64,000 nucleotides of DNA from Adineta vaga (GCA_021613535.1 CP075493.1:12958001-13022000); one strand, 5' to 3'; positions 7,699-18,500 are shown, counted from the stretch's first letter. Notes: generated by a model not told the origin, from the sequence alone. Numbers and translations: made by a program.

Positions 7699-10600
7699 AT
7701 GGTAGATAATCTTCAAAAACTTAAGAAAGATATTGCTTCAAATAATGTGGTCATATTTGTCGGTCCAGATGTATCAGTTTATACCACCAATGATGAAACA
7801 CAAGTGTCACATTGGAAAGGATTAATAAAACATGGATTTCAACAATTTGATCGTTTAGGACAAATCAACGACAAACCTTTAACGAACTTGGACGATAACA
7901 AAACAGATATAAACGAGTATGTTCTTATTTCTAATCTAATTAAGCCTTACTTGAAAGAACAACCGAGTGTTTATCAAACATGGCTCATCAATACTGTAGG
8001 ACAATTATTTCCAATAAAACCAGAACTAATACAAGCAATAGGAGAATTGAAATGTCCAATTGTAACAACAAATTATGATTCACTTCTTGAAGATACGCTC
8101 CATAAAGAAACACTAACATGGCACGAATACCAAAATAATACTTCCTTAAAAGATATTACAAACTATATTTTACATCTATATGGACATTATCAAAATTCTG
8201 ATAGTGTAATTATAAGTAGTGATGATTATAACCAACTTCATAACGATGAATTTGCACAATCAAAACTACGAATGCTTGTCAAAGGTAAAACTCTACTATT
8301 CATTGGCTATGAAACTGATATACATGATCCAAATTTCTCAAATGTTTTAAAATGGCTATTCAATATCACTATGATCAATCCACCGATAATTTACAAACTG
8401 ATACGATCAAATAATTACGGTTCATTTCTAGAAAATATTAAAGAAATTTCTTATGGAAATAATTTTCAAGATTTACTTTTATTTATCAAAAATCTTTCAT
8501 CATTTTCATCATTAAGACATACAAGTTTATCATTAGCAGAACGAAGAGAAAGTATTCGTGAAAAATATTTAAATTATTTAATTAAAGAATATGGACAAGT
8601 ATCCATCTTTGGATATGCAAATAATGACATAAATTTACCATTAGAAAGTGTTTATGTTGACTTAAAATTTGATCCAACACATCCGTCGATAAAAGCAATG
8701 ACAACAGTTCATATCAATGAAGAATTCAGACGAAAACTTGTATCACCTGGATTTTTCAGTGAAACAGAAAAACGTAAATTATTTCAAGTTGTTACGGAAA
8801 GAAATGCTTTTAATCCTCATACAATCTATCGTGATTTAATGATTGATCAATGGTTAAATGTTCTTCTTAGTAACAATCAAATATTTTCTGACCATGAAGC
8901 AAGGACAATCAGATATAAAATATCTCAATTAAAACAAAATATTCTCACCGAAAATCATCTCAAAGAATCACAACAATATCAAATTCAACAAGCATATAAA
9001 GAATTTAAACATTTCATTATCTTAGGTCATCCAGGATCCGGAAAAACGACGCTATCGAAATGGTTAGTCATTAATACTGCTCAACAATGTTTACGAAAGA
9101 GAAATATGTTATATGATCGAAATGATTATTTTCATGAAAAAATTCCCATTCTTATTCCCATATGGAAATATGTTGATTTTGTCAATACAAGTCAACAAAA
9201 AGTAACTTTACTTGAATTTATTTATGAAAATCCAACATTTAATTCAACATTCTTTACTATGGAAGAAAGAAAAGATTTATCTACATGGATTATTGAATGT
9301 TTATTACATGGAAATATTTTAGTTATATTCGAAGGATTAGATGAAGTACCTGTTCATGTTGATCGAACTGATTTAATGAAAGAAATTAATTGTTTATTAG
9401 AACGAGGTACTGATTATGATTCGAAATCTGGTAAACTTATACATTCACTTTATGAACAGAAAGAAATTAATAATACAAAAAATCCAATTATAGGCAATCG
9501 ATTTATTCTTACAAGTCGAATCGAAGGAAATTATTTTGAAGATATTAATTTCTACATTCCAAGATTAACAATTCAAGATATGTCGAATGAAGCTTTAAAA
9601 CTATTTTGTAATTCCTATATGGAATCTATTCAAAAGATATCACGTAAAGAGAATAAAATCGATCAATTATATAATGATATAATAAAAAATCAGGATATTT
9701 TTCAATTAGCAATTAATCCTCAATTAGCAAGTGTTATTGCAGCTGTATACCATCAATATGAAGGAAAATTACCTGAGAAAAGAATTGATTTATATGAACA
9801 AGCGATTGATAATATGATTGAACAGTTGATTATATCTTCGACGAATGAACAAATACAATTCAATTCAATAATGTTATGGTCGATTTTACAAGAAATAGCT
9901 GAATATCTTCATCATAAAGTGGAAGGTTTGTCTGAAAAAATTTTAAAAGAAATTATTGGAAAATGTTTAACATCATTAAATTTGATGAATACAAGTGATA
10001 TTATTGAATCGTTGGTTGATATTTTTAAATATAAAGTTGGTTTATTGAATGAATTTGGTCATGATAGTTTTCGATTTATTCATCGAACATTTCAAGAATA
10101 TCTTGCCGCAAAAAGTTTGATTTATTTCAATGGTATCGAACGATCTAAAGAGATGATCTATGAAAATATTCAAAAAAAAATTGATATTCCCAATTGGAGA
10201 GTTCCTCTCGACATGACATTTGGTATCTTAAGTAAATATCATCAAAATAATGGCCTATTTCATTATATCTTAGAAAACTTACTAACAAATCAATCAATTC
10301 TATCCCTAATACCATTCGTTATTATCGATTCATTGAATGACATGTATTTTCTTTCCAAAGATATTGAACATGATTTAATTAGAAAATTAGCTGAAATGTT
10401 ATTATCTGATTATAAGAATCTTTCAGGTTTTGCAAGATTAATCGAACATCAAAACTTAATTCATTTCTATTTTTCCAAATTAAAAAAGATATCCTATCAT
10501 ACAACAGTCAAATGGTTTATTGAAAAGATGATAGATGATAATATTGCACCATGTGCGAATATAATCTATCATTTAAAATGGTATAATCCAAAATTTCATC

Positions 10601-13600: not shown

Positions 13601-14268
13601 TGAAATGGTTAACACAAAAAATGATAGGTTTCAATGATGTTCATAATACAAGATTTTCATTGATGTTCATTGATTTTCTATTATGTTTACTTTCTGCATG
13701 TGTTCAAAAAGAAGATTATATATATCGAAAAATAACGAATTCTTCTCATTTCAATAAAATTCAATTGATTAAACTCTTAGAAAAGATGGTTCATTATCAT
13801 CCATTTTTTCCAGCACGAGGCAATGCGTTTATTCTAATTGCTGCCATGGATTATGCCGATCATAATGTCATATCGAATGCAATGAATACATTATTTGATG
13901 AAAATCTTGTTAAAGAATATTCGATGATTGCTGTTCCACTTATACATTTATCACCCAATGAATTCATTGATAATCTCTTAGAATCTCTTGAAAATGAAAG
14001 TGCTGTGAAAGCCTATGAAATCTTGAAAATCTTTACACAATTTGCCTTGAATGAGAAAATCGATGCGAATAGTAAATCGAAAATAATCAACTATTTAGTT
14101 CGAGAAATAGGCGAATTTAAATCGAAAAAATCTGTAAGCTATTATTATACAGATATTAAAATTCCATTTACAACAACATTAGAAAATGAATTATATAAAT
14201 CATGGATTAAAATTCAAGGACTTTCGGGTAAAACACAATATTCGATTGGTATTGATGAATCAAAATGA
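7699..14268 (+). CDS. SIR2-like domain + NACHT NTPase + helical-repeat C-terminus (NLR/STAND-like), 2189 aa, intronless
   Basis: SIR2-like motifs VIFVG, IVTTNYD (8065-8079), ILHLYG and LLFIGY. Walker A GHPGSGKTT (9025-9051), Walker B ILVIFEGLDE, ILTSR, LAINP and winged-helix FRFIHRTFQEYLAA. Confidence 0.9.
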   Translation: MVDNLQKLKKDIASNNVVIFVGPDVSVYTTNDETQVSHWKGLIKHGFQQFDRLGQINDKPLTNLDDNKTDINEYVLISNLIKPYLKEQPSVYQTWLINTVGQLFPIKPELIQAIGELKCPIVTTNYDSLLEDTLHKETLTWHEYQNNTSLKDITNYILHLYGHYQNSDSVIISSDDYNQLHNDEFAQSKLRMLVKGKTLLFIGYETDIHDPNFSNVLKWLFNITMINPPIIYKLIRSNNYGSFLENIKEISYGNNFQDLLLFIKNLSSFSSLRHTSLSLAERRESIREKYLNYLIKEYGQVSIFGYANNDINLPLESVYVDLKFDPTHPSIKAMTTVHINEEFRRKLVSPGFFSETEKRKLFQVVTERNAFNPHTIYRDLMIDQWLNVLLSNNQIFSDHEARTIRYKISQLKQNILTENHLKESQQYQIQQAYKEFKHFIILGHPGSGKTTLSKWLVINTAQQCLRKRNMLYDRNDYFHEKIPILIPIWKYVDFVNTSQQKVTLLEFIYENPTFNSTFFTMEERKDLSTWIIECLLHGNILVIFEGLDEVPVHVDRTDLMKEINCLLERGTDYDSKSGKLIHSLYEQKEINNTKNPIIGNRFILTSRIEGNYFEDINFYIPRLTIQDMSNEALKLFCNSYMESIQKISRKENKIDQLYNDIIKNQDIFQLAINPQLASVIAAVYHQYEGKLPEKRIDLYEQAIDNMIEQLIISSTNEQIQFNSIMLWSILQEIAEYLHHKVEGLSEKILKEIIGKCLTSLNLMNTSDIIESLVDIFKYKVGLLNEFGHDSFRFIHRTFQEYLAAKSLIYFNGIERSKEMIYENIQKKIDIPNWRVPLDMTFGILSKYHQNNGLFHYILENLLTNQSILSLIPFVIIDSLNDMYFLSKDIEHDLIRKLAEMLLSDYKNLSGFARLIEHQNLIHFYFSKLKKISYHTTVKWFIEKMIDDNIAPCANIIYHLKWYNPKFHQILLINLHHDSQFCEWPIDSLLRFYSNQIQNNAILTELKFKNALVDNPELIQHINHDSHWLSLIVALYGGYHNYNSERTISEYYALSQFLQLDENIRMPFFFYYQDIWGKDRTANNMVAHMDTTQTNYWREKPLFDQKKIYKESFLTANILELLKEKKSPLVLTKKLRKQIKTQKLVIHEKIEALIALIALGDNDFIQLTLKEEDQTLITYIEHRIDQLISVLKDPIARWSTHINTYLLKIQNNSSIHCKIYLSFIADSGGLPVNTHILANAANTSEEKSTFNAEYFAYKLTSTTTDFTYDIAVIADKLDVFGNSNEIMNSVLKIHNTIQRYRPIRMYPWPLDIFIFKSRDQNDIPIEFFNCLENFHTNVPYLPAAISNMFFAEGYFNRNPELILPVILLHFGIMSTQSERFEIYANLLPELGTKVNIKEFLLEKIHSIHHSYYKARALYQLAEFYDEKCYELLKEAFQTTKNISKSVLKFQILEKIFNVLHYKEVTEKCFIQQVINELILICDTIDNVYDRATASIRLSFYGSGEFRKRYIANAIFTLSQMNRNEEKIEFIIKLKPLVSLYPDLQINFNEIINHMKNKTHHYLIHSYYGRILSAEQLQTDNIELQSLFRLFAQLNDNKISINKIETIDQLWLNVYQDITNQSHIEKLLKLALNTELLLTPLAAIVIDELLQQSKEEMISVLFPYIIKPSNEVLPIVHRWFTDYDHSHQIKNLAAILLVEGKRIFESVIDTIVELITNDNDQMRYRAQRIFQHPERDPKKPSKRISVIGERTLMKIFQHLTKNRHFPRTGAYLRSFFYDLLWDDPIVYMNLLKKVTKLKETNDSTDVQRMFYFNKIKFIDDRTWNLILNSLQSIPYATYIEEVFHSTIVLTQSNQITENDWNNFVRILSTNDRSQFVEKFYIIFTDVAVINLILNEICALTTINDEEDLEIIESKVINEISVQIEDLLQYTYHQIIHIARCNFYVSCELNQAILNILNNIQINNIMMENLMKWLTQKMIGFNDVHNTRFSLMFIDFLLCLLSACVQKEDYIYRKITNSSHFNKIQLIKLLEKMVHYHPFFPARGNAFILIAAMDYADHNVISNAMNTLFDENLVKEYSMIAVPLIHLSPNEFIDNLLESLENESAVKAYEILKIFTQFALNEKIDANSKSKIINYLVREIGEFKSKKSVSYYYTDIKIPFTTTLENELYKSWIKIQGLSGKTQYSIGIDESK

Positions 14269-14897
14269 TACTTTTTATTATTCTATAGTAAAGAATGTAT
14301 GTTCCGTTCTTTTTTTATAGTTCACAGTGCAATTTTTATATTTGTTTTTAATCAAGATACTTTTCTATTGAATAAATACACATAGAGTGTATAATCATTA
14401 AGATATGTGTATTTACAAAACATGCGATAGTTATCATAGTATTTAGGAATGATCGGAAAATTTCAAATTCTTATAAGTGGAAAATTACCTACACGATGCA
14501 TACCAGTAAAGTAACAAAATGATGGAATCACTGTATAGTTTGCAATTTGTTTCAATTCTTCTACCAAAATACATTTTCTTTGAAAAGAAATTGGCAAAGG
14601 TTTTTCAGATATATTTTATACAGACCATCAGTATACAGGTTATATTATATCACGTGCTTCATTCAAAAAAGTAATGAAAAGTTATCAGGATCATTGTCAA
14701 ACAGAGTGTCACACGTATCAAATATTCCCTGACAATGTTTTATTAGAGTCATATATACTTCGTTATTGATAACTGAAACTTATTGCCGTGTCTAAAATGT
14801 TTGCAATTCACTTGAGATACATTATCAATAAAAAATCTCACAACATGTTGAACCGTCGCCATAAGCTCACACTAGAGTATTCGTTTTCTATTATTTT

Positions 14898-15362
14898 GTG
14901 GTGTTGGAAGCGATGCTTGCCGAAGACAAAAGTACGAGTACAGAAACAAAATCGTCACAAACTACACACCGTACTTGTTTTGGCTTAAATTTCAAAGATA
15001 TTCTTCACAATATCAGTAAATTTCTATTACCTCTTATCTTAACTATCTTTACCATTGTTGTTACCTTTGATCAAAGAAATGAAAATCGTATTCAACGTGA
15101 AGAAGATCGACGTTTAGCTGAAGAACAACGAAAACATGATAAACAAATAGCTGTTGATAAACGTACAAGTGACGATTTGAATGCTGACATACACAAAAAC
15201 ATGACACGTGATCAACGAATGTATGAACTAAATATTGAACAATAAGAGCGATATAAGATAGATCATGAAAATATCTTGATAATCTTCTTCTTTCCTATTA
15301 TAACGAAATGGGATTATTATTTCAAAATACAAATGGAACATCACTAGCATCCCATCCAACTA
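14898..15362 (+). pseudogene. Truncated TM/coiled-coil gene (N-terminus of the type found on rotifer pentapeptide-repeat proteins)
   Basis: TM segment LLPLILTIFTIVV followed by a charged coil. In-frame TAA at 15243, a frameshift, then residual YLDNLLLSYYNEMG. Ends at a hairpin repeat. Confidence 0.55.
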
Positions 15363-15537: not shown

Positions 15538-18500
15538 TCAATTATGAATTCCTGTTTGTGCTTTATAAATACCATTTAAACAGGATTCACATTCATTTAA
15601 AAGAATAATCAGCATTTTTAAGTTATTCTTTGCATATATAATATCCGGAAAACTATCTCCATTCATATCGTTGATCATAACCACAGATATATTATTATGG
15701 TCACTTTTTTCATCTTGTTCTTGATTTTTAAAACTTCCATTTCTGTATCCAATATATAAATAAATAGGATGATACCCATGATATCCAATGAGAATATCTG
15801 ATTGTCCATCACAATTAAAATCACTAATGCTGAAGAAATCAGAAGAATATTCTACTATTCTCAAAAGTTTGGGTACCGTAAAGGTTCCATTGCCATAACC
15901 CATTAAAACACTTATAGGATGATAAAAATTATTTGTGAATACAATGTCTAAGTGATTATCATCATTCCAATCAAAAGCAATAATCATGTCCGGAAGCGTT
16001 GTAAGTCCAGTAAAATACCATTTATATGGATAGAAAAGTCCATCACCATATCCAAGAAATATTCCAATAGTCATAGTTTCGAAAGTACTGCAGACGATGT
16101 CTAAATTTCCATCGTGATTAAAGTCAGCAATGGCAAATGATTTTGGGACAATAATGGCAAGAGTCGATAAGATCAGTGTGTGTAATGTAAAATTACCTTT
16201 TCTATCTCCCATCAATATAAATATGATATTTTTCTCTGTTATAAAAACGATATCTAAATGATTATCATTATTAAGATCGGTAGTTTCCATAGCTAATAAT
16301 TCACCGAAGTCTTCCTGAAAAATTGTTCCTAATACTTGAAAACTACCATTTCCAAATCCTATCAAAAGATCAATTTGCGATTGACTTCGATCACTAATAA
16401 AAATATCCATTATCTTATCATCATCAAAATCACCAACAACTATCAGTTTCGGCTGGATATTATTTCCTAACGTAAGAATTATTCGTTGATCAAACGTGCC
16501 ATCACCATTTCCCAATAAAATATTCAAAGTGTTCTGCCAAGAACAGGAAAATGCAAGATCAGATTTATTATCAGCATTGAATTTGGCAATAACAAGATAC
16601 TCTACAAAATCACAATCGTCAATGGTTGTTATAAATTTTGCGAATTTCGGTGGAGTAAGCTGTGGTACTAAACAAAAGAAGATGGGAAATATTTATTCAC
16701 AAACATCACCGCCATTTTTAGCCTTCACTCATTTACTTACTCATCGTTGTTAATATGCTCACTGTTATGTCGAGAGATGTTATTGATACGGTTGTTGTAT
16801 TTTCCTTTATTTGTGTCGCCGTCTTATTTGATGGAACAACTAGGAAAAAATATATGAGTCAGTTACAACTTTATTGTAACACTTACGATTGATGAAAAAA
16901 AATGAAAGTGAGTTCAGAGAGAATGTGATGCCTAGATATTGTTCTCCATCATTCTCTGAATATCCTATTAAAATTTCCTAACTGCCAGATGCAAACAAAC
17001 CGAGAGATTCAAAATCCAAAAGTCTAACGCCTGCGGATATGGATGTGTGAGGATAAGGGTGAGGGCGTATGTGTGTCGGGGTGAGAATGGGAGTTAAGGA
17101 AAGGCACATACATCCTCACCAATACCTTCACCCCCACCCTCAAGATGAAAATCGAGAACACACCCTCACTCATATGTAGGATAATTTCGAAATAAACATT
17201 GGCTGTATGAAACTGTATTGAGAAAGGGAACAAATATCTCGAGAAATATCAAAATTTTATCAATTATTTACCTTTTTTATTATCATAATTCCAAATTAAA
17301 AGCAATATTACTATCATCAATATCAGTAATGCCAATGATAGAAAAATCTTTCGAGAAATACGAAATCTTGACATACTACTTGTCCTAGAAACAATAACTC
17401 TCATATGAGATCTAAAAAATCACTTGAATATCAACACTTACTGTACTTCGGGAATCGTTTCGATCGATTCTTTCTTGTCAGATTCAACCGATTTCACTTC
17501 AACACAATGTTCAGGTTCAACAATTATTCTTCGTTTTTTTCGATATTCATATAATTTCATTGCTATAACAATTAGTTTGGGACATATCCATTTCAAAACA
17601 ATTGCTAAACCACCTTGAAGACCAAGAATAACAGTGATTGTATGTAATAAATCTATTTGTTTAATGTAAGTATATGAACATGATAGAGGTGAACATCGTC
17701 TAAAATATGATTCATAGTCTTTCGTTCTCTTCCATTCTTCTACAAATAAATGACGAATTAGTTCATTGATAGTCATATTTGGTAAAAAACGGCTTTTCAC
17801 ACTTGTTGATAGAGGAATTGTCAAGTTCATATCATGTGTAGAGTTTGTATATAGTTGAATAAGAGAGAGACAAGAATGATCATAGAAACATTCGAGTGTT
17901 GAAAGAAAAAATGATTCACTTGGTGTACATCCGATTTTTAATCCTTTCACTTGACTTCGATTTCTTGACTTCGATTCAATGAAATATGCTTGACTTGTAC
18001 AATTTGCATGTAATCCACAAGAACAGCCATCATCATAGATCATAGGTTTAGTTGGCAAATAAGATTCAGGACCTGCGTAACCATCCGGTATATATATATA
18101 TTCGTAGTTTGATCCGTAGGTAGAAATAATAGCATTTCCATGATTGATACTTCGAATGAGATCGAGAAGACGAACAAGTTCAATATGAACACTGATTTTA
18201 TTCTCCTCAACGAGTATATTGATACGATCATCAAAGTTTTGTTTGGATAGAAGTTGAGCGGTGACAAAAAGTGAGGTATGAAATTGGTTGATAGAACTGT
18301 TAACTGATTGATTGGAGAGTTGACATAATCCTTGGAGGAATTGGAGATGAGCAGAAAGAAATCGACGATAATCTCTGAGGTCATAAGAATAGAGGTCAAA
18401 AACAAGTCCAGATGTTATGTTGATTCGCCATTGATCTGAACTAAGTGGACTTGTACAAATCTAAAAGATATTTGAATATATGTCATTTTCATGAAGAAGT

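Follow-up and report, generated by a model that had tools for sequence, protein, structure and literature searches.

Eukaryotes are assumed to have received NACHT and SIR2 modules from bacteria on several occasions, in events that are ancient and whose donors are blurred. Horizontally acquired genes of bdelloid rotifers have reportedly been described by Gladyshev et al. in 2008 and by Flot et al. in 2013. In the literature searched, we found no earlier report of the acquisition of a SIR2-NACHT or other NLR-like gene in bdelloids. Multiple transfers of NACHT modules from bacteria to eukaryotes have been proposed (Kibby et al., bioRxiv 10.1101/2022.07.19.500537), and a SIRim-NACHT-repeat architecture has already been described in some animals and fungi (10.1101/2024.09.18.613514). 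In the case of Avs5, oligomerization or filament formation is reported to drive NAD+ cleavage (PMC11897194, PMC12931631).

Here, we analyze a SIR2-NACHT gene in a window of 64,000 nucleotides from the genome of Adineta vaga (GCA_021613535.1 CP075493.1:12958001-13022000; positions are counted from the first letter of the window). It is likely an intact gene that was derived by transfer from a bacterial SIR2-NACHT-HEAT-like gene, with a putative STAND-type mechanism and a degenerate SIR2 site.

Gene structure and gene family

The coding sequence (Table 1) begins with an ATG and comprises 2189 codons plus a stop in a single exon with a GC content of 27.9%. The next upstream stop lies 7 codons before the ATG (the open frame is 2196 aa long), and the starts and stops of the orthologues coincide with those of the 2189-aa protein. 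Given 0.085 stops per codon at the base composition of the gene, a run of 2189 codons without a stop has a probability of about 1e-85. The intronless frame of the preliminary description is exact in these respects. The neighboring genes, from a region in which it had considered many genes spliced, show up as series of short ORFs next to one another, the pattern expected of spliced genes.

The public model (I4U23_004264) comprises 2265 aa, with residue 2184 spliced across approximately 750 nt to an additional exon. Because the resulting 3' tail is absent from every orthologue compared and the joint was not found among the read contigs, whose main read sets are genomic-DNA-like, this exon is probably not part of the 2189-codon gene, and the 3' end of the public model is probably wrong.

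Orthologues (55–68% sequence identity) were detected in A. steineri, A. ricciae, and five Rotaria species; among the sources that bear a species name, Adineta and Rotaria are the only carriers of the family. A count of the paralogues, which the preliminary description had called for, yielded four copies in A. vaga, one of them broken. A DUF3825 gene located upstream was rejected as a candidate component of the system; it is single-copy and not adjacent to the paralogues.

Table 1. Features of the SIR2-NACHT locus (residue numbers refer to the 2189-aa protein).
Feature	Position	Strand	Basis or remark
Complete single-exon CDS	7699..14268	+	Public locus I4U23_004264, Adineta vaga; termini match orthologues
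SIR2 domain, defence type (SIR2_2), residues 1-275	7699..8523	+	Pfam, fold match, motif census
Codon of Tyr161	8179..8181	+	Aligns with catalytic His146 of KomC and HG histidine of FAM118B
Linker between SIR2 and NACHT, residues 276-425	8524..8973	+	Identity 61-69% among rotifers, 39% vs bacterial P0043
NACHT NTPase (nucleotide-binding, helical, and winged-helix parts), residues 426-830	8974..10188	+	Motifs, family Pfam scan
Walker A GHPGSGKTT, residues 443-451	9025..9051	+	Motif
Walker B LVIFEGLDE, residues 541-549	9319..9345	+	Motif
Winged-helix motif FIHRTFQEYLAA, residues 793-804, invariant His795	10075..10110	+	Motif
All-helical HEAT/ARM-like solenoid, residues ~831-2175	10189..14223	+	Predicted structure, colinearity with bacterial proteins
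Extra terminal exon in public model	14998..15245	+	Tail in no orthologue; joint 14247->14998 unseen in read contigs

Domain architecture

The N-terminal domain has a SIR2 fold, as had been proposed from the sequence alone. It matches the Pfam family SIR2_2 (PF13289) over residues 121-225 (E 1.8e-16; 61 bits at a cut-off of 24.5), and an AlphaFold model of residues 1-310 (pLDDT 86.4, pTM 0.82) retrieved FAM118B, ThsA, DSR2, and KomC in a Foldseek search at a TM of approximately 0.6, with FAM118B as the top match. The catalytic histidine in the HG motif of such domains is represented by H146 of KomC, and the corresponding mutants of ThsA and DSR2 are inactive. In a motif census of 81 non-rotifer relatives and 51 rotifer sequences, this position (residue 161) is occupied by histidine in all but one of the non-rotifer relatives (80/81) and in 28 of the rotifer sequences; in the protein from the window, it is a tyrosine. 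The GxG loop of the latter reads GPD (Asp24), whereas G24 is present in all 81 non-rotifer relatives, and the second glycine loop (GxGxG) reads YETD (Glu205, Asp207) at a position where 75 of the 81 have G205. The TTNYD motif is retained and the position of the catalytic asparagine is intact; N125, D127, and H159 are present in all 51 rotifer sequences. Because of the tyrosine at the position of the catalytic histidine and the loss of two glycines in the NAD loops, the assumed NADase activity appears doubtful for this copy. Degeneration of the canonical site extends to about half of the rotifer sequences, and many Rotaria copies (such as P0008) are canonical. Among the domains of the protein, SIR2 is the least conserved (47–55% identity).

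The NACHT module, whose Walker motifs had been described as intact, carries Walker A and Walker B motifs (consensus GxxGxGK[ST] and hhhhDGLDE, respectively) that are invariant across 19 relatives. Also the TSR motif (R607) and the winged-helix motif FIHRTFQEYLAA are intact and invariant in the family, and FIHRTFQEYLAA is invariant even among the bacterial sequences of the alignment. A histidine-containing winged-helix motif of the form FxHxxFQE[FY]LAA is typical of animal NLRs and diagnostic of the NACHT clade. The score of the protein against the Pfam family NACHT (PF05729) is 18.8–21.3 bits, which is below the cut-off of 26.7; all 19 family members scanned match the model at E <= 1e-3 (best 8.7e-12), and the bacterial relatives that share the chassis exceed the cut-off. 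The NCBIfam model of the antiphage NACHT protein EruA matches residues 662-808 (E 2e-9). A single-sequence search with the NACHT part yielded no match among solved structures.

The C-terminal part, for which a helical region of about 1300 aa had been claimed, is predicted to form an all-helical, HEAT-like solenoid of approximately 1350 residues. A model of residues 1000-2189 (pLDDT 87.8, pTM 0.87) comprises about 70 short helices, and its structural matches are generic HEAT/ARM solenoids. The solenoid is colinear with the last 1200 residues of bacterial NACHT proteins with a length of 2000–2500 aa. In a Pfam scan, the window protein matched neither LRR nor death-fold families, nor those of TPR or ankyrin repeats, which agrees with the reported lack of a death fold and LRRs.

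Bacterial relatives and phylogeny

An exhaustive HMMER search over 1.84 billion representatives identified a 2242-aa protein (P0043) as the top match outside the rotifer-type family. Residues 3-2179 of the window protein align to residues 3-2240 of P0043, with 34–43% identity in each of five segments. The gene for P0043 is located on a 260-kb contig together with relaxase, NikA-like, AraC, HxlR, MFS, and ADH genes, and was recovered once more on an 8-kb contig of a different data set; one of the contigs that carry it belongs to sample ERZ27235513. P0043 is the only full-length bacterial relative known; a closer relative of P0043 was absent from 400 evenly drawn genomes of Bacteroidota (the phylum of a Cytophagales match), and a metagenome scan revealed only three rotifer-like loci and no closer relative. 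Four intermediate metagenome sequences (P0034, P0039, P0040, and P0042) were taken as rotifer-like by their contig features only. The same NACHT-solenoid chassis occurs in bacteria with TIR, DUF4062, caspase, or SIR2 heads. P0090, its cluster-mate P0220, and P0106 are each longer than 5000 aa.

The preliminary description had proposed to settle the origin of the gene by a phylogeny of the NACHT domain. In a tree of NACHT and solenoid, which was based on the faster mode of MAFFT and a quick LG+G4 search, is affected by heterogeneous composition, and includes no eukaryotic NLRs, the rotifer-type family is monophyletic (support of 99), and P0043 is its sister (100). They are followed by a clade with a protein of Saprospiraceae among its members, and the whole assemblage falls within representatives of Actinomycetota, Bacteroidota, Acidobacteriota, and Chloroflexota. 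The bacterial proteins that surround the pair bear TIR, caspase, or DUF4062 heads on this chassis. The SIR2 tree agrees in that rotifer-type sequences and P0043 form one clade (100/99). Because the colinear, full-length relative is encoded in the company of bacterial genes on its contig and the rotifer clade is nested among bacterial NACHT-solenoid proteins, the sequence comparisons provide good support for a horizontal acquisition from bacteria before the split of Adineta and Rotaria. The other origin that had been envisaged, a deeply conserved animal NLR, finds no such backing: a profile of the family matched solved animal NLRs (NLRP3 and NLRC4 chains) only at E >= 0.4 and over about 20 residues, and the only named carriers are Adineta and Rotaria.

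Origin and integrity of the gene

The gene is physically part of the host chromosome. Although its bacterial-type architecture and the absence of an intron could point to bacterial contamination or an assembly artefact, the probability of this explanation is negligible: the locus lies within an 18-Mb chromosome of A. vaga, its neighbors are LRR, F-box, and FG-GAP genes that show intron-like breaks, its GC content (28%) equals that of the host, and the gene is present in independent assemblies of at least seven bdelloid species and in read sets of A. vaga from 2013. A transfer in the opposite direction, in which the bacterial P0043 gene was taken from a rotifer, is also very improbable. P0043 represents a single bacterial lineage and adjoins a mobile-element module, and the SIR2 tree does not settle the order of P0043 and P0039; however, the NACHT-solenoid chassis is diverse in at least four bacterial phyla, where its effector heads have been swapped, and the monophyletic rotifer-type family excludes P0043 (99), with the pair nested among bacterial sequences. 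Somewhat more weight, albeit still little, has to be given to a vertical descent from an ancient opisthokont lineage of SIRim-NLRs (clade A, FAM118B/SIRanc) that was lost in most animals. Human FAM118B is not only the top Foldseek match but also the best solved SIR2 structure by sequence (E 1.5e-6), and SIRim-NACHT/NB-ARC-repeat proteins of fungi and animals have been reported (Bonhomme et al., 10.1101/2024.09.18.613514). By contrast, prokaryote-type SIR2 relatives reach 113–180 bits with the 900-residue query, for the most part by the SIR2 segment alone, whereas FAM118B reaches 31 bits. P0043 is colinear over 2200 residues, including the solenoid, whereas clade-A proteins are described with ankyrin or TPR repeats and not with such a solenoid. 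Moreover, all eukaryotic matches with a species name are from bdelloids, and the same preprint and its accessible supplements mention no rotifer.

An acquisition from bacteria would be compatible also with a gene that is now expressed but idle or a decaying relic and intact in looks only, which we consider about as unlikely as descent from clade A. In favor of such a decay are the SIR2 site, which is degenerate in the window copy as in about half of the rotifer sequences, the low conservation of this domain, and the broken paralogue. Certain read contigs show skips of 56 and 76 nt, which may represent frameshifted alleles. A clear sign of RNA was not found among the read sets: none of the runs is registered as RNA, the two main sets behave as genomic DNA (on account of their heterozygosity and their coverage of intergenic regions), and the only run that is possibly RNA yielded two short contigs of low depth. 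However, a stop-free frame of 2189 codons at such a low GC content cannot persist neutrally, the NACHT motifs and three residues of the SIR2 domain (N125, D127, and H159) are invariant among the rotifers, and every domain shares 47–72% identity with the Rotaria orthologues compared. These observations argue for an acquired gene that has remained intact.

Putative mechanism and significance

The donor of the acquired gene would have been a bacterial, tripartite STAND/NLR-like gene of the defence type that combined a SIR2 head with a NACHT switch and a long HEAT-like solenoid as sensor. The entire gene was probably transferred as a single piece into the common ancestor of Adineta and Rotaria and duplicated thereafter. 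The solenoid presumably binds a ligand, probably one derived from a pathogen, whereupon the NACHT module would take up ATP and form oligomers, bringing the N-terminal SIR2 domains together. Cleavage of NAD+ would be the output in the bacterial relative and in those rotifer copies that possess a canonical site. Because the canonical site is degenerate in the window copy (Asp24, Tyr161, Glu205, and Asp207), its SIR2 domain is less likely to be a standard NADase than a domain that serves in assembly or partner binding or whose chemistry has changed.

It is tempting to speculate, although we would not consider it the probable outcome, that bdelloids acquired a complete bacterial SIR2-NACHT-solenoid sensor long after the origin of animals and kept it as an innate immune receptor, with the canonical copies killing or arresting infected cells by NAD+ depletion and the degenerate copies acting as co-assembling regulators or decoys. 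Because the whole three-part gene can be aligned over its full length to a bacterial protein, with an identity of about 40%, it represents an unusually clear case of the acquisition of a complete bacterial-type sensor by an animal. It also offers natural pairs for experiments, namely the bacterial and the animal version, and animal copies with and without the catalytic histidine, which could reveal the fate of a prokaryotic abortive-infection device in a multicellular host.

Comparison with known systems

Like the bNACHT proteins (Kibby et al., 10.1101/2022.07.19.500537), the rotifer protein has an effector at the N-terminus (their listed effectors include SIR2), a NACHT in the center, and a sensor at the C-terminus whose repeats form a superstructure, but it is twice their typical length because of the conserved 1200-residue solenoid, and its host is an animal. 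The Avs5 (AVAST type 5) systems (PMC11897194, PMC12931631) likewise combine a SIR2 head with a NOD-type ATPase and a C-terminal sensor (SIR2-STAND-sensor), whereas the rotifer ATPase belongs to the NACHT clade according to Pfam and motifs, and the window copy lacks the catalytic histidine. Of the Avs/bNACHT architecture assigned in the preliminary description, the effector-NACHT-sensor layout stands, but membership in these groups has to be rejected: neither the window protein nor its Rotaria orthologue nor the NACHT of P0043 matched any NLR-like, Avs, or bNACHT model of PADLOC, where only marginal P-loop matches (MkoA, mad8) were obtained.

Among eukaryotic proteins, the canonical animal NLRs (NLRP, NLRC, and NOD) have in common with the rotifer protein the NACHT switch, a winged-helix motif of the FxHxxFQEYLAA type, and the logic of sensor, switch, and effector, but the rotifer protein has neither a CARD, PYD, or DEATH effector nor LRRs. 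The defence-type SIR2 fold is shared with the eukaryotic SIRim clade A and FAM118B (10.1101/2024.09.18.613514; PMC12700824), the latter being the best solved match, but the sequence resemblance to FAM118B is weak (31 bits), a bacterial protein is what the rotifer SIR2 clusters with in the tree, and the repeats are HEAT-like and not of the ankyrin or TPR type. With the foreign genes already known from bdelloids, it shares the features of a bacterial-type, intronless gene that resides in a bdelloid chromosome and is common to bdelloid genera; their catalogue would thereby gain an immune-type family.

Gene structure and genomic context

The SIR2-NACHT gene consists of one uninterrupted reading frame that opens with ATG. 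At its GC content of 27.9%, a stop is expected about once per twelve codons, and the chance of a stop-free run of this length is about 1e-85 under the gene's own composition. A word-index search identified the ORF as the hypothetical protein I4U23_004264 of the bdelloid rotifer Adineta vaga, which is encoded on an 18.1-Mb chromosome-scale contig (window: C1:12958001-13022000) of a 100.8-Mb, six-contig assembly. The public protein (2265 residues) is the same as the ORF through residue 2184, after which about 750 nt are skipped to reach an additional exon. The orthologues of A. steineri, A. ricciae, and Rotaria socialis end 5-6 residues past the motif GKTQY, as does the plain ORF; the start methionine is likewise common to the orthologues, and the frame is closed seven codons 5' of it. 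The 14247->14998 joint was seen in none of the contigs from four public runs. We regard the coding sequence as a single exon, as the preliminary description had proposed, and the annotated 3' extension as an artefact; the additional exon may be part of another, small gene or of no gene at all.

The flanking LRR and FG-GAP genes are of ordinary eukaryote type. The adjacency of the DUF3825 gene looks incidental, because this gene is present in one copy in the genome and adjoins none of the three SIR2-NACHT paralogues. The sequencing runs containing the SIR2-NACHT gene behave as genomic DNA; from one possible RNA run came two short contigs of low depth that fall within the ORF.

Coordinates of the gene, its domains, its neighbours, and related loci (C1, C3, and C5, chromosomes 1, 3, and 5 of the A. 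vaga assembly G000)
Feature	Location	Strand	Remarks
LRR protein pieces	window 4110-5769	+	over several adjoining ORFs
DUF3825 domain protein	window 6248-7219	+	full length; Pfam E 5e-48; 480 nt upstream of SIR2-NACHT gene
SIR2-NACHT gene	window 7699-14268	+	2189 codons
Exon of public model	window 14998-15245 (with skipped part, 14248-15245)		short, lysine/arginine-rich, common to no orthologue
FG-GAP repeat protein	window 15538-16527	-	
SIR2, defence type	residues 1-275		Pfam SIR2_2 E 1.8e-16
NACHT	residues 426-830		Walker A GHPGSGKTT; Walker B LVIFEGLDE; TSR Arg607; winged-helix motif FIHRTFQEYLAA
Solenoid	residues ~831-2175		~70 short helices predicted in 1000-2189
Paralogue L019	C5:4954667-4957393		two overlapping frames; ~277 residues missing
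Paralogue L020	C3:4359795-4362509	+	2201 aa; near-identical to L021
Paralogue L021	C3:4290156-4292870	-	2201 aa; near-identical to L020
Second NACHT family, L013-L018	C5:5393000-5402900, C5:2776500-2786400, C1:13738500-13748400, C3:2089000-2098900, C3:16900000-16909900, C3:16089500-16099400		

A. steineri, A. ricciae, R. sordida, R. socialis, R. magnacalcarata, and Rotaria spp. Silwood1 and Silwood2 have full-length orthologues (55-68% identity), and others (45-58%) come from metagenome contigs. Counting of paralogues, as the preliminary description had advised, gives four copies in A. vaga, including the window gene. The chromosome 3 pair is inverted and 70 kb apart, with tree branches of 0.003-0.005; the chromosome 5 copy, split over two frames, is probably a pseudogene. 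In runs of the same species from 2013, contigs omit 56 nt between two AATGTTT repeats (run X2) and omit 76 nt with 2 nt inserted (runs X2 and X3) (window 12094-12151 and 9878-9955). Both skips lack GT..AG ends and would shift the frame; they may come from alleles that are broken, or be artefacts of assembly or template switching.

Domain architecture

All three parts of the protein bear out their initial assignment as a SIR2-like N-terminus, a NACHT with intact Walker A/B motifs, and a helical C-terminus. Fold comparison was run on the first and last of these. The AlphaFold model of the SIR2 domain (from 32 sequences; pLDDT 86.4, pTM 0.82) matches a SIR2 fold, with human FAM118B, ThsA, DSR2, and KomC as the closest solved structures (TM ~0.6). 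The solenoid model (residues 1000-2189; pLDDT 87.8, pTM 0.87) matches karyopherins, SF3B1, mTOR, and CAND1, which, judging from the prediction, are generic HEAT/ARM solenoid matches; none of the death-fold, LRR, TPR, or ankyrin families of Pfam matched the protein. The NACHT motifs, including Arg607 and the winged-helix motif, do not vary across the family and its bacterial relatives. The window protein falls below the cut-off of Pfam NACHT, which matches 19/19 scanned relatives (best 8.7e-12), and residues 662-808 match EruA, a NACHT antiphage model of NCBIfam.

Probable bacterial origin of the gene

Bdelloids are known recipients of massive gene transfer. Because a claim of transfer depends on the identity of the nearest relatives, an exhaustive HMMER search was run, which yielded 7638 matches at E <= 1e-3 among 1.84 billion representatives. 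The top match outside the rotifer-type family is P0043, a bacterial protein of 2242 residues and the sole bacterial relative of full length found, which aligns with the window protein from end to end (3-2179 to 3-2240), with identities of 34% (SIR2), 39% (linker), 43% (NACHT), and 37% and 36% (solenoid segments). Its gene lies on two contigs, a 260-kb one from ENA (sample ERZ27235513) with tightly packed bacterial genes (relaxase PF03432, NikA-like, AraC, HxlR, MFS, zinc ADH, DUF5009) and an 8-kb one from a separate Logan run; on both, a 286-aa gene without Pfam match lies immediately upstream. The relaxase and NikA-like gene, about 6.3 kb upstream, suggest that the P0043 gene is carried on a mobilisable element.

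In a NACHT+solenoid tree (50 rows, 1709 columns; IQ-TREE quick search, LG+G4; compositional heterogeneity), the rotifer-type family, including four rotifer-labelled metagenomic rows taken as eukaryotic from contig features alone, is monophyletic (SH-aLRT 99) and sister to P0043 (100). P0106, P0090, and P0103 (from a Saprospiraceae MAG) branch next, and the entire assemblage sits amid bacterial rows in this tree, which has no animal NLR rows. A SIR2 tree (32 rows, careful search, mixture model) likewise unites rotifer-type sequences and P0043 in a single clade (100/99) against 17 prokaryotic SIR2 domains. Both protein ends tell one history in these alignments, and the agreement of the two trees indicates that the three-part gene was assembled before transfer. 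The preliminary description had left a choice between horizontal acquisition and a deeply conserved animal NLR. Searched with the family profile, NLRP3 and NLRC4 chains score no better than E 0.4, over ~20 residues, which places animal NLRs, by sequence comparison, far more remotely than the bacterial relatives and speaks against deep conservation; the trees support horizontal acquisition.

NACHT and the entire solenoid (residues ~425-2176) form a chassis that aligns end to end (E 1e-100 to 1e-140 in a local search of retrieved proteins) with 2000-2500-aa proteins bearing other N-termini, namely TIR (P0130), DUF4062 (P0165), caspase (P0111, Bacteroidota MAG), and PDC-S60-like (P0099) heads. 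It occurs in named bacterial genomes, including an Actinomycetota MAG (5.26-Mb contig), Bacteroidota, Cytophagales, and Thermoanaerobaculia; the SIR2-NACHT proteins of archaea and bacteria that are 1000-1400 aa long are more distant. The metagenomic P0042 (JGI sample 3300059473; ~50% identical to the window protein) pairs with the SIR2-bearing P0039 (support 100), lacks a SIR2 domain, and has a Peptidase_C14 (caspase) ORF 33 nt upstream. An effector seems to have been swapped here on the shared chassis; the source organism is very AT-rich and probably eukaryotic.

A. vaga also harbors a second NACHT family, only distantly related and made up of giant single-exon ORFs (1617-2283 aa), whose identity to the window protein (~25%) is confined to NACHT and whose N-termini (~100-250 residues) have no Pfam match. 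One member (L013) is 46% identical to P0180 of Rotaria socialis. The family may be another acquisition, because its closest match outside rotifers is P0133 from an Ardenticatenaceae MAG.

Divergence of the SIR2 active site

Tyr161 of the window protein aligns with the catalytic His146 of KomC, a residue that entries 8zsi and 9xvc carry in mutated form. In the paralogues of A. vaga, this position is Tyr in the chromosome 3 pair and His in the broken chromosome 5 copy.

Residues at SIR2 sites in 81 non-rotifer relatives and 51 rotifer-family sequences (45 at position 24)
Position	Non-rotifer	Rotifer family	Window protein
24 (GxG loop)	Gly 81/81	Gly 29/45	Asp
161 (catalytic His)	His 80/81	His 28, Tyr 19, Phe 3, Gln 1	Tyr
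205 (second Gly loop)	Gly 75/81	Gly 28/51	Glu
207	Gly 56/81	Gly 28/51	Asp

Because these four replacements affect conserved site residues, canonical NADase chemistry has probably been lost or altered in the window copy; many Rotaria copies retain the full canonical set. The SIR2 domain has the lowest identity to orthologues of all domains (47-55% vs 69-76% for NACHT), yet it is far from neutral decay. Asn125, Asp127, and His159 are retained in 51/51 rotifer-family sequences.

Relationship to known defense systems

Sequence and models establish how the domains are ordered, that the ATPase motifs are intact and the solenoid is conserved, and that the SIR2 site is degenerate. By analogy with work on bNACHT and Avs5, the solenoid would bind a ligand, followed by ATP-dependent oligomerisation and activation of the effector by proximity. 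The Avs/bNACHT-type architecture proposed initially stands as to layout (effector-NACHT-sensor), which is the same as in bacterial NLR-related proteins, with P0043 as the bacterial counterpart. It does not extend to the PADLOC Avs and bNACHT models, which matched neither the window protein nor a Rotaria orthologue nor P0043; the SIR2 domain of P0043 matches the ThsA, PDC-S25, and LmuA models. A literature search for this family in bdelloids found no describing paper. SIR2-NACHT-repeat proteins have previously been noted in some animals and fungi, rotifers not included (Bonhomme et al., 10.1101/2024.09.18.613514). The rotifer gene represents an unusually clean example of a known architecture rather than a new kind.
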